Shown here piece after piece: positions 31,306-36,723 of a DNA stretch of 64,000 nt. Numbering within the stretch: the stretch's first letter is position 1; every line of letters begins with the position of its first letter. Below the pieces are notes generated by a model. That model was given only the letters and a program-made list of their open reading frames with translations, did not search any database and was not told where the DNA came from. The DNA is taken from positions 1,736,001 through 1,800,000 of the forward strand of contig JBLDXI010000032.1 of the NCBI GenBank assembly GCA_047495785.1, given 5' to 3'. The DNA comes from Lepidodermella squamata (taxonomy: Eukaryota; Animalia; Gastrotricha). The position numbers were made by a program, and so were the translations under genes.

Positions 31306-34300
31306 TCAAAATCGCATTTTCGAATTGCTGAAACCGCTGCCGTACGGTGACGAGCTGCCGTATGACGACGACGAGCCGCGAATGGCGCGCGGGCTCAGGT
31401 CGAAGGGTGAAGACGGGTTCCGCCAGTTTTGCCACCAGCGGTACGCGCCATATAGCAGACTGCCGGCGACTAGAGCGGCGCCGCCAATGGCGAGAAAACG
31501 GCGGAAAATCGACGCGTCGGCTAACAGCGAGCGGCGCACCTGCTCGACGAGATCACTTTGCCACCACGAAAGACGCCTGAAAATCATGAAATGATTTATA
31601 AAACATATTATTAATTGGGTGCTTTCTAATTTTTCAAAGATTTTCAAATCTTAGAATCTGAAACTTTGGTTATAAGATTTTCGACCGGCTTGGAATTTAG
31701 AATAGAAATGCCTAATAGATCGAGTTCGTTGTTTTCGAAATTTTAGCCGTTGATGGTACAGTTTTTTCGCTAAATTAAGCTACCCTGATCGAAAAATTTG
31801 AGCTCAGTCTAATTCATATTCAGAAATTTGCAAACCTCAGTTTAGTCATTTTTGAAAAAAATCATCAAAAATGCATATCAATAGCGTGATGCCCCAGATA
31901 GAAAAATAAACGAAACGATTTAGGGCATTGATGAAAGATCAATCAGGTAAAAAATTGACCTCCCACAAAAATTTGAATTCTTATAAATTCCTCATAGTTT
32001 TGAGGTGATTAAAAATGTGTTTAAAAAATGCAATTTAAAATTTAAGGTGGACGGTATAAAATGGACTGGGCAAAAATTCTCGGTAAATAAAAATTTCCGA
32101 GCTATTCAACATTGACAATGAGTTCAATTTTCAGTCCTCATAATTTCCATGAAAATTGATAGCAACAAAAACAAGGAAGCAGTTTCAATTGTGCATTATT
32201 TGCTGCGAGTTAATTTGCAATTTAAATTTGCGCGTCCTACCAATAGCCACTGAACCATAAAACAGTGAAGGTGACCGCAAATCCAACTTAGCTATCAATG
32301 GATTAGAGTTTTGATCGAATTGGGTGGAAATATTTCAATCTAAATTTCAAATTTTTTTCCGCAAAGAGCAAATTCATCGATTCAATCAATTCAATCAATA
32401 CTCAGATGATCATATTTATTACATCACTATTTTAATTTTGATTCATCCAGAGTTGAAATTATTTAAATTGATGTTCGGTATTTAAATTAATTTGACTAAT
32501 TTTTGGTATAACTTACGGGTAAGCAGCCATTGTAGCGAGACGGACGTAGATTTCCGAAGAAATATGATCGACGCAATAAAACGGCTGGGGTGGCGGTAGG
32601 CCGTGCCGAGCGCAAAATGCAGCCGGCTGCATGGCGTAGTCCTGCAGGACAGCTTGTTGTTCATTCTTCGTCGAAACAACGAGAACAGGCGTTTGATTCA
32701 ACGCGAAATGTTTAACATAAATCCGCGCAATGTAATCAAACGATTTCGGATCTGTCACGTCGTAAGCCAGGCAAACTACATCGCAACGCCTTAGTTCAGC
32801 CTGCGTTAGCACATCCGTCAGCCCAACGACGTCGATTTCGTGTAAAATCAAATACTTTTTCGACCCGATACCGCCTTTACTACGACCGTGCGGTAGGGTT
32901 ACTGAGTTTATTGTGTAGCCAGATAAATGGGCGGTGTCTAGCGTTCGAACGTAACGCAAACTGCGCCCGAGTAGGCCCTGTAATAGGGTCGATTTGCCGA
33001 CTCCTCTAGCACCAATAACTTGGCACTGGTATACAGACCTGGCCGGAGCGCGTTGAGGCCAAGGCTCCGAGGCAAGAACGCTAATAGCTGAATACTGATT
33101 ATCATGTTCGTAATTATACCCAAGGTAGGCTAAATACTCGAAAAGCATAGGCACATCTGTAGTGGCTAATAAAGTCCATTGAGCTAGGAAACCTTGCAGG
33201 GAAATCCAACCCCTCGCGTCGGTTTCAACCTGGTTCCGCACCTCAGGACCCCAGGGCGAGACGGGGCACAACGAAAATAACGACGCTTGTTCGGAGGGCG
33301 ATAAATGCCGATCACCATCTTGGTCCGCCTTTCGGAAAATCGAGTACAAAAATTGGTAGCCATCGGGCGATAACTCGACGCAATTGCCGTATTTTACGTA
33401 CAACCCAGGTCTGAGGTACTCTTTATTAAAACTAGGCAAATTATCCGAGTAGCCGAAACGGCGTAGCACCGTCCATGTCGTTTCTTGACGGCCTCTTTGC
33501 ACGAATAATTTGTGCAGGAAAATGAACCCGGCCAGTGTTAGACCGTCGTCTTTTACCCCATCGGGTACGTATCGCCGAATAACGGCTTTCACGTCATCGA
33601 GAGATTGCGGCTGTAACGGCGCCGCGAAACATTGACGCTGAAATGTGTTCAACTCGCTGTCATTCAGCTTGCTATCGCCGTCTAAATCGACGATTTTGAA
33701 AATTCGAGTCAGAGCCCGACGGCAGTCGGGTGTTAGCTCTTTCTCGTCTGCGTTGTAAATCGGCGCCGTCGGGTGAATGACGGCTTTTTGGGCGTAGTAA
33801 AACATTTCGCTAATATTTTTCAAATTCTTTGCCGAGCAATGAATGCAACTGTCAATGTCAACGTGAGACTCCATTAGTTTGACAACTTCTTCCTGAGTAA
33901 CAACAACTGGAAGATCGTCTTTATTGCCAGCAAGGATGATGGGCCGATGGCACTCCTCGCCAAGAATGCTTCTGATGAGAGGTATCCAATGACCAGCGAC
34001 GCGCATCCAGGTTTGAGCGTCATTCAAAGCGTAAACAACTACGATAACAGATGCCTTGCGAATTTCGTCTCGCAACTGATCATTAGACTGCTCTCGGCTC
34101 GAGAAGTCAACAATTTGCGTTGGCACACGTTCAGGAGTAACATCTGGAGGAATCGTGATTTCTTCCACTCGAGCAGGGATAGCGCTTTGGTCCAAAAATT
34201 CTTCACTGACCAAAGACATAATTAGAGATGTTTTTCCAACGCCATCTGAACATTTTAACTTAAATTCAAAATAGTTACCAAAATATGGGGAACTTACTGT

Positions 34301-34334
34301 CGCCAAGGAGCAGAATTCGCACGTTCTTCGACAT
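31306..34334 (-). CDS. RHOT1: Mitochondrial Rho GTPase Miro (3 exons)
   Basis: MSKNVRILLLGD..GVGKTSLI, two EF-hands (DLDGDSKLNDSE, DQDGDRHLSPSE), second GTPase domain (GARGVGKS), C-terminal TM in the last exon (31306-~31577). Confidence 0.96.
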
Positions 34335-34448
34335 CTCAATTAACAACCCTAAGAGAAACAACAACATTGCATAAATGAGGGATGCTTTTAGCTAAAATTT
34401 ATTGGGTCTGTCTTAATCATTCACATAAGAGAATGAAAAGCTTCCTGA

Positions 34449-34868
34449 CTATGACAAGTCCGGCTGATGGTAACGCTTTTCGCGATTGACGTTGGCGGTA
34501 AAGTCTTTGAAAGCCTGAAGAATCTTCGAGTCTTTCAAGTCTTCAGGAAAAGGATTCTTGCCAACGGCCCAATAATAAAGCTCCCAATCTCCAGCTGGAT
34601 GATTAAGAATACGGTCGAACTCCTCGAGCTCGCTTTCGTTGTATTTATTTAGGTTGGCTGCCGCAAAGTTAGACAAAAGCAATCCACTCTCGAGAGTGCC
34701 TCGTTTTCTAGCTTGATACAACAATCTTGCTCGTTTCTTTTTCAAGTCTTCAGTTGGTGCAGCATCAGTAGATAACATCATACGACAAATATTGTTATTT
34801 CTTGGAGCCAGCAGCGTTTGTCTCAGGATAGGACTTTGCCACTTCGCGATCAATTTCATCCATGACAT
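34449..34868 (-). CDS. SDHAF2: Succinate dehydrogenase assembly factor 2 (Sdh5)
   Basis: RARLLYQARKRGTLESGLLLSNFA and DWELYYWA; basic, acid-free N-terminal presequence. Confidence 0.93.
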   Translation of the reverse strand: MSWMKLIAKWQSPILRQTLLAPRNNNICRMMLSTDAAPTEDLKKKRARLLYQARKRGTLESGLLLSNFAAANLNKYNESELEEFDRILNHPAGDWELYYWAVGKNPFPEDLKDSKILQAFKDFTANVNREKRYHQPDLS

Positions 34869-35079
34869 TTTCTTGCTTTAGAGCAAAAACAGAATAGACG
34901 TAAATACCGGCCACCAAAAGTCCAAGTCCAAGACCAGTTCGAAGGTTGAATCCCTTGACTCGCTTGGTATCGGTCGCTCGCTTCAAATTCAAGTCTTCAA
35001 CTTTTTTAACGTAATGCTTTTCAAAAGGAGTAAGCTTTTTCTTGTCAAGTTTTGGCATCAAATCTCCATCACCAGACAT
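34795..35079 (-). CDS. COA3: Cytochrome c oxidase assembly factor 3 (CCDC56)
   Basis: Basic coiled segment, NLRTGLGLGLLVAGIYVYSVFALKQE TM signature, acidic tail. Confidence 0.85.
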   Translation of the reverse strand: MSGDGDLMPKLDKKKLTPFEKHYVKKVEDLNLKRATDTKRVKGFNLRTGLGLGLLVAGIYVYSVFALKQENVMDEIDREVAKSYPETNAAGSKK

Positions 35080-36723
35080 GGGTGATAGCAATATACTATA
35101 TAAAACAGTTATGAAATCGGAGTAGTACTAACAAAGCGGCACTGCATCTCAAGCACAACCGATGATTGAGACAAATTTCACTTACATGCATGGCATAGGC
35201 AAAGAAGGCATGTGAAAAAAAGAAAAACCGTGGGCTGACTAAAGTGTGAAGGGTAATAATACAGGTGGCAATTACGCTAAAAGCAGACAAGGATAATGCT
35301 ACGGTAGAAGTTTAGAAGAAGGTGTTGAGCTATGGTTTCATCCTCCATGGATGTCCGATTTGAACCAGAGAACTGGCTTGAGCCAGCCATTCAGCGCCCT
35401 TCCAGAAAAACAAGAGAAGGCAAAACGGTCTTTCGCGGGTTTTTAGTCGGGTTGAATGACAATTTTGAATAAGTGAAAATACTTTTTACGCTACTCTTAC
35501 AAAAATTTAAAGTAGCTCACATAGATATCAAAGAAAATAATTATAAAATTAGCCGCGGTTTTTGTTTAATTTTTCGAAAAATGCGGGGTGCTCATCGCCG
35601 CTCAAAAGTTCCTAAGGCCCAAACCCTGCCTGCTTGACCTGACCCTGGTGATGTCCACTGCTTCTCATACTATGGAAAGTGCAACAACAGTGTATCGAGA
35701 AACGGTTCCGCATATTGCATCAGTTCAACCAGGAATTGAACGAAGCCTGGGTTTATTTTTCGGATCCTCAGAAAAAAAGCAAGAGATGAAGGAATGTAGC
35801 TGCCAGATAGGTTTCTTCTACTTTGAAATTAGAAAATACGCTCTACGGTTCAGAAATGCAGCATAGCTTACTTCTTACGCGGGCATAATTTGTTGGGCTT
35901 ATTTCTTATTTGGCATAACTTATTCACAGTTGAAAATCCTCAGATCCAAGACCATGAAGTTTGAAACTCGTCTGCTGCTCGGAACTCTACTCTCCACGAC
36001 TGGGAAAGAAGTACATAACGTCTAAATAACCACAACATGGATAATTTCAGATGAAAAAGATACGCTAGCCACGCTTTGTTTGGTCCAGAAACAGGATGAA
36101 TTTCAACAAGTTGAAAGACTGATCTTTAACTCTGGATCTGACCATAAACTCTCTATAGCATGTGGGGCTAAAATATTCAACTAAAACAGATAAATCAGAA
36201 AATCCGCTGACCGAAAGTGAACAGGTGATAAAGTAGCCGAAATGTCAATAACAGTCATCTTCGCCCCTGACATTTTCGTTATAAAACTCGATAATCTTTG
36301 CAATTTATTTATTTATGAGCATTAATATCCAAGGGGTGTGCAGGACAGCTCAGCTGAAAAAGAAGCATGATTAGTACAATAAGATTCAATGTGAAAAGGC
36401 CATTATGTAGATATCAACAAAGAAAAGTAGGAAAAAAACAATGATGTATAAAAAAACATCGTTTTAGACTCAACAAGGAATTGCAATGGCGTGTTATCTC
36501 TCTGATGACGACGACCTGCAGAACGTGACCTTCTTTTTCTTCTGCTGAAGCGACTGCACACATTCTTGATGCCTAGTACACATTATTGATGCAAAATAAA
36601 CTCGAATCAACCACGAAGCATAGTGACTTTTATTTTCGCAAAGTCATAGTCAATTTTAAATATCAGCAATCAATCGCTAAAGAAAAACAGTTTCATATTC
36701 AACGATAGACTATAATGTCATAT

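Follow-up and report, generated by a model that had tools for sequence, protein, structure and literature searches.

The genes for COA3 (CCDC56) and SDHAF2 (Sdh5) of the gastrotrich Lepidodermella squamata share 74 nt of DNA on the same strand in two different reading frames, and translation of SDHAF2 very probably begins inside COA3. The DNA stretch analysed, here called the window, has a length of 64,000 nt. It carries on its minus strand a head-to-tail trio of genes in the order COA3, SDHAF2 and Miro, with a G+C content around the locus of approximately 40–50 %. The two frames and their common part have the following positions in the window:

34795–35079, minus strand: coding sequence of COA3 (CCDC56), 94 amino acids plus stop, ATG at 35079, TAA at 34797–34795
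34449–34868, minus strand: coding sequence of SDHAF2 (Sdh5), 139 amino acids plus stop, ATG at 34868, TAG at 34451–34449
34795–34868, minus strand: dual-coding stretch of 74 nt, encoding the C-terminal 24 residues of COA3 and the first 25 residues of SDHAF2

The SDHAF2 frame is +1 relative to that of COA3 and contains additional in-frame ATGs at 34859, 34781 and 34778. COA3 aligned over the full length of the Pfam profile PF09813 Coa3_cc (profile positions 1–48 of 48, E 4e-15, 55.5 bits at a cut-off of 27). SDHAF2 covered positions 1–75 of the 76 positions in PF03937 Sdh5 (E 2.4e-23, 82.3 bits at a cut-off of 27), the Sdh5 domain being located at residues 47–123. With both profiles matched above cut-off, the protein names proposed in a first-pass annotation of the window were upheld, and its 74-nt overlap of COA3 and SDHAF2 on the same strand in different frames was found correct in all coordinates, including those of the ATGs 34859 and 34781. 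By reading of its sequence, the COA3 protein of 94 residues has a single hydrophobic helix, GLGLGLLVAGIYVYSVFAL, a predicted membrane helix, which is followed by the charged segment KQENVMDEIDRE. SDHAF2 is known as the "flavinator". The conserved RGxxE motif of the SDHAF2/Sdh5/SdhE family was present as RGTLE in the window protein and in that of a related species. Exact-sequence look-ups with the COA3 and SDHAF2 proteins of the window gave no record. The search of the whole genome (121.2 Mb in 151 contigs) revealed SDHAF2 as a single-copy gene, thus the locus overlapping COA3 must supply the functional matrix protein. For comparison, the published assembly of L. squamata comprises 122.8 Mb in 157 contigs with 43.3 % GC (PMC11660948). 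The independent DNA run X8 and an RNA contig from run X9 had zero indels across the region, and X8, spanning also intron and intergenic sequence, agreed with the window. The frame relationship is therefore not an assembly error.

The related species was represented by the ENA metagenome scaffolds L009, L011 and L012. Its identity to the window was 86 % for Miro, 66 % for COA3 and 54–62 % for SDHAF2. The relative retains the gene order COA3, SDHAF2, Miro together with an out-of-frame overlap of 59–62 nt at the same place; a 3-nt indel inside the overlap between its haplotypes leaves both frames intact. On scaffold L009, in-frame SDHAF2 ATGs upstream of the Sdh5 domain occur only at 225, 234 and 264, while the COA3 stop is located at 286; from this stop to the Sdh5 domain the relative has no ATG. 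As all ATGs of its SDHAF2 precede the COA3 stop, a start behind this stop is impossible there, and on the comparison of the two sequences such a start is excluded as the conserved solution. Synteny in relatives had been proposed as a check at first reading, and the gene order and overlap were recovered; the SDHAF2 start within COA3 claimed at that time agrees with the possible starts of the relative, and the counter-case, a start of SDHAF2 at 34781, fails on the lack of an ATG after the relative's COA3 stop. A more distant SDHAF2 locus (L014) had no COA3 upstream, thus the pairing of the two genes is not widespread. A scan of JGI metagenome proteins found no relative and was uninformative.

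Eukaryotic members of the SDHAF2/Sdh5 family bear an N-terminal mitochondrial presequence. Judged by amino acid composition only, the long form of SDHAF2 is the only one with an N-terminus that looks like a presequence: five or six lysine and arginine residues, no aspartate or glutamate and a net charge of +5; in both species acidic residues first appear at position 35. A form started at 34781 has 17 residues ahead of the domain, three of them acidic (D6, E11 and D12); so short and acidic a segment would provide no presequence for a matrix protein. The first approximately 30–45 residues of SDHAF2, encoded in part by the DNA of the COA3 tail, may thus act as mitochondrial presequence.

When the codons of COA3 were resampled under an unchanged protein, the +1 frame was open across the overlap in approximately 50 % of the trials. 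The ATGs of the overlap are nearly automatic given the Asn-Val and Asp-Glu codon pairs of COA3. The stretch without ATG between the COA3 and SDHAF2 starts was not significant in the same resampling (P 0.59 and 0.29), and this stretch and the open +1 frame were both discarded as evidence. The overlap is confirmed as real on comparative and functional grounds, not on the open frame alone.

The RNA data consisted of assembled contigs only, and a contig spanning two genes does not prove one transcript. In X9, one contig of 713 nt was colinear with positions 35097–34407, showing no break, no branch and no intron in COA3 or SDHAF2. Its 5' end carried 22 letters foreign to the window, CGATTGAATATTAAATTTTCTG, joined at 35097. 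The two ends of the RNA were assigned to these signals:

35096–35097, minus strand: trans-splice acceptor AG of COA3, placed by the leader junction of X9; the exon starts at 35095 and has a 5' UTR of 16 nt
34398–34403, minus strand: AATAAA, the poly(A) signal common to the COA3/SDHAF2 RNA, 46 nt after the SDHAF2 stop

Since the leader ends with ...CTGAG, the acceptor AG is common to leader and genome. Five hundred thirty-six copies of the 22-mer were present in the genome, and an AG followed in all 28 copies sampled. Two types of copies were distinguished by the sequence after the AG. The first type continues with GT and a conserved downstream sequence, some copies being arrayed with a spacing of 8.46 kb (contigs C17, C22 and C27); these copies, e.g., L001, L004-L006 and L015-L025, look like leader RNA genes. 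The second type is formed by many copies with 5'-truncated leaders, fused to assorted 5' ends that resemble those of unrelated mRNAs and have an early ATG, e.g., L003, L007, L008, L024, L026-L029, L031, L033 and L034. They have the appearance of retrocopies, derived either from trans-spliced messages or from a mobile element subject to trans-splicing. The 22-mer was treated as part of a genuine spliced leader of approximately 31 nt, (A)ATATCTGCGATTGAATATTAAATTTTCTGAG. This leader sequence had no match in the literature, and the literature search found no published trans-splicing, operons or bicistronic genes in gastrotrichs; the genome paper of L. squamata is silent on trans-splicing and operons (PMC11660948).

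The deepest RNA run, X1, was accepted as RNA because of its SMART adaptors, the removal of an intron in Miro and the end of coverage at 35388. A leader was found nowhere in X1, not even at 35097, and the run is uninformative on trans-splicing. It covers also 35097–35359, a stretch with several ATGs that is presumably the unprocessed outron. The primary transcript starts approximately 130–280 nt upstream of COA3, and the spliced leader is added at 35097/35095. Adaptor-bearing loose ends of X1 at 34839 and 34971 were rejected as 5' ends of RNA: they carry letters of the SMART oligonucleotide and the junction sequence resembles the oligonucleotide, which indicates mispriming. One X1 contig ends at 34506 and continues into a stretch of A residues on the plus strand, antisense to SDHAF2, with neither an A-rich template nor a poly(A) signal nearby; this end is probably a library artefact and possibly the end of an antisense RNA. 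At the level of contigs, the data support one leader-capped unspliced RNA that covers both frames. The bicistronic mRNA postulated in the first-pass annotation has thereby gained a leader-capped contig over both frames, its translation route staying unsettled.

RNA contigs terminated at 34385–34409, and the relative has an AATAAA at the place equivalent to 34403–34398 of the window. Because the frames overlap, a COA3 poly(A) site ahead of the SDHAF2 start is impossible, in line with the lack of room for a poly(A) site between the genes stated at first reading, and every complete COA3 mRNA must contain this start. Another AATAAA is located within the coding sequence of SDHAF2 (34644–34649, minus strand, codons Asn-Lys). 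If used, it would yield a COA3-only message ending within SDHAF2; a poly(A) end at this site was not seen in the RNA contigs. The relative lacks an AATAAA at the equivalent position and has an ATTAAA further upstream. Comparing both species, there is no conserved poly(A) signal inside SDHAF2. The third gene of the trio begins shortly behind the common signal:

34298–34350, minus strand: start of Miro, acceptor AG at 34350–34349, ATG at 34334, exon 1 to 34298

Miro is located approximately 100 nt downstream of SDHAF2, has a lone splice acceptor and probably continues the same operon, with its own leader acceptor. Its intron at 34297–34246 (52 nt) is missing from an X1 RNA contig in which exon 1 runs directly into 34245. 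The position of the first Miro intron differs between the species, being located after LLGD in the window and after TQIV in the relative (L009, approximately 888–935). The window is uninterrupted at TQIV, where the intron of the relative sits, and the aligned sequences indicate a gain, loss or sliding of a Miro intron between close relatives. In both species the long Miro frame ends with ...RLATMAAYP (window 32513–32520) and shows no obvious membrane anchor at the C-terminus; one more small exon may be located downstream.

Among the routes by which SDHAF2 could be made, we favour, with an even chance of being right, leaky scanning past weak COA3 AUGs on the leader-capped bicistronic RNA. The transcript would be polyadenylated once, after the AATAAA at 34403–34398, resulting in a mature RNA of approximately 0.75 kb with both frames. 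Most ribosomes would initiate at the COA3 AUG or AUGs, which have weak contexts, and some would bypass them, traverse approximately 190 nt free of AUG and initiate at 34868 in the +1 frame. Met1 of COA3 has a c at -3 and a t at +4, Met8 (35058) has a t at -3, and in both species the two COA3 AUGs share a pyrimidine at -3 and the lack of a G at +4. The SDHAF2 AUG at 34868 has an A at -3. Within the 189 nt between the COA3 AUGs and the SDHAF2 AUG there is no AUG in any frame, again in both species. In the small sample of leader-fused genomic retrocopies, seven of nine had a purine at -3 of the first AUG, thus the usual rule for start contexts seems to be valid in this animal. A mini-ORF of three codons, ATG GAG ATT TGA (35058–35069, minus strand), with a strong start context is located in the +1 frame relative to COA3, and its TGA overlaps the ATG of Met8 (TGATG). 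It is present in the window only; its absence from the relative makes it probably incidental. In the window the mini-ORF complicates simple leaky scanning, and it could feed reinitiation downstream. Leaky scanning is also weakened by the nature of the contigs, which cannot prove a single molecule and may have lost a minor leader junction within COA3 during assembly, and by the use of leader trans-splicing in an animal that has a good acceptor-like site 7 nt ahead of the SDHAF2 AUG:

34876–34895, minus strand: candidate internal acceptor in COA3, pyrimidine tract and AG at 34877–34876, 7 nt before the SDHAF2 ATG

Addition of the leader at this site is a possible, tentatively held alternative, by which the primary transcript would become either a COA3 mRNA or a leader-SDHAF2 mRNA in a mutually exclusive manner. 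The intact RNA would then serve as COA3 mRNA with SDHAF2 as a passive 3' part, and the trans-spliced RNA would be a monocistronic leader-SDHAF2 message with a 5' UTR of 7 nt and a destroyed COA3 frame. The tract, ttctgtttttgctctaaAG, has 11 pyrimidines in 15 positions and is joint best among 129 coding AGs, scoring above the proven COA3 acceptor (9 of 15). It is found at the same place in the relative, but there it reaches only 10 of 15 (top 15 %) and contains purine-ending codons (gca, ctg) despite pyrimidine-ending synonyms. Moreover, the internal AG is forced by the Gln-Glu codons of COA3 and the pyrimidine tract by the codons of the transmembrane helix. A change of aag caa to aaa cag in L012, which shifts the AG by 3 nt, was considered as a compensatory change of the acceptor and rejected, since Gln-Glu codons always yield an AG. 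That the animal performs trans-splicing, as seen from the leader at COA3 and hundreds of genomic leader copies, speaks for the internal site, as does the lone acceptor of Miro so close downstream; either/or processing in operons without spacer is known from Ciona and from SL1-type operons of C. elegans (PMC1488885). An internal junction would be recognized by ...TTTTCTGAG followed by CAAGAAAATG or AAAATG, the leader being joined at 34875 or 34871. However, no contig of X1 or X9 had a leader junction at 34877 and X9 was unbranched there, which is weak evidence as the assembler may prune minor junctions. A scan of JGI metagenome contigs for the pattern of leader plus internal junction gave no match and was uninformative. 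The COA3 frame continues for 80 nt beyond the candidate acceptor at 34877, to its stop at 34795, hence a complete COA3 mRNA cannot end before the acceptor; in operons resolved by leaders the upstream poly(A) site is located at or before the downstream acceptor, and this arrangement is not found at COA3-SDHAF2.

A separate leaderless SDHAF2 mRNA appears unlikely. It would originate from an internal promoter in or upstream of COA3, or from alternative cis-splicing of the donor GTAAGT at 35185–35180 to the internal acceptor. This consensus donor on the minus strand is located 90 nt upstream of the COA3 acceptor in sequence covered by RNA, but the RNA contigs contained no spliced joint from it, a joint skipping from 35185 to 34876 was absent from all runs, and in the relative a comparable donor is missing ahead of COA3. 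The COA3 acceptor might serve a cis-intron of a non-coding first exon in addition to trans-splicing. The summed depth of X1 increases from 5' to 3', which would speak for such a message, but it was left unused because contig depth is no guide to the ranking of parts within a gene and the increase sets in already upstream of 34877; no contig had its 5' end at the internal site. Less credible still is the lack of any functional overlap, with SDHAF2 starting at 34781, 13 nt after the COA3 stop, by termination-reinitiation or on its own mRNA, and with the open frame upstream being a product of chance. The close succession of the COA3 stop and ATG ATG at 34781–34776 fits this reading, and so does an open +1 frame in about half of the resampling trials. 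Against it stand the relative without an ATG between COA3 stop and Sdh5 domain, the 17 residues with three acidic positions ahead of the domain, which make no matrix presequence, and the position of the sole SDHAF2 gene of the genome in this overlap. Reinitiation after a frame of 94 codons is generally inefficient, and the start at or just after the upstream stop that termination-reinitiation uses does not exist in the relative. Of the three translation routes listed in the first-pass annotation, reinitiation is thus disfavoured by the relative's lack of an ATG after the stop, while leaky scanning and the internal trans-splice both stand.

Leaky scanning, the route favoured here, is known from polycistronic mRNAs of green algae and flies, in which the first frame is short and its AUGs are few or weak, and the second has a start in better context. 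The gastrotrich locus differs from these in that 24 codons are read again in the second frame as a putative targeting sequence. In animals, it is rare that two nuclear genes, conserved and unrelated to each other, overlap out of frame over a long stretch. Human MOCS2 (MOCS2A/MOCS2B) has two out-of-frame frames in one gene, overlapping by some tens of nt and encoding two subunits of the same enzyme; it was first explained by leaky scanning, and the two products were later attributed to alternative first exons. By formal analogy, MOCS2 is the closest counterpart of two out-of-frame overlapping frames of one pathway. In contrast, COA3 and SDHAF2 serve different respiratory complexes, and no isoform with an alternative first exon was seen among the RNA contigs of the gastrotrich locus. 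Peralta et al. (2012) reportedly described a bicistronic mRNA of Ccdc56 and mt-Tfb1 in Drosophila. Two later sources likewise place Ccdc56 (COA3) on a bicistronic mRNA with mt-Tfb1 (bioRxiv 10.1101/704403; PMC9953451), and the Drosophila COA3/mtTFB1 precedent named at first reading is confirmed by the former. The fly pair resembles the gastrotrich pair in having COA3 as the small upstream frame and a mitochondrial biogenesis factor as partner, whereas in the gastrotrich the partner is SDHAF2 instead of mt-Tfb1 and the frames have a 74-nt out-of-frame overlap. The gastrotrich RNA carries a spliced leader in addition; to our knowledge, flies have none. As gastrotrichs and Drosophila belong to different phyla, the arrangement of COA3 most likely had an independent origin.

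SL1-type operons of C. elegans and those of Ciona have no intercistronic DNA, and their processing is possibly mutually exclusive (PMC1488885). They share with the gastrotrich locus the occurrence in leader-trans-splicing animals and the lack of a spacer between the cistrons. In these operons, however, the coding sequences are free of overlap, the poly(A) site of the first gene lying directly next to the acceptor of the second (PMC1488885), whereas SDHAF2 starts 74 nt within the frame of COA3 and the contigs showed no leader on SDHAF2.

The locus thus extends a known type of arrangement to a new gene pair and a new phylum. It would be the second case after Drosophila, and most likely an independent one, in which COA3 is the small first frame of a mitochondrial message with two genes. 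One protein would have its mitochondrial presequence written over the tail of another, and a targeting sequence would easily arise when an acidic, GA-rich coding stretch is read in its alternative frame. The finding gains interest if the internal acceptor is used: a splicing decision would then determine how much assembly factor for complex IV is made relative to that for complex II, and the same DNA would have three roles, as COA3 helix and tail, as splice signal and as SDHAF2 targeting sequence. The locus offers a natural test of whether leader-trans-splicing animals use scanning on uncut messages or tolerate splice sites within coding sequences.
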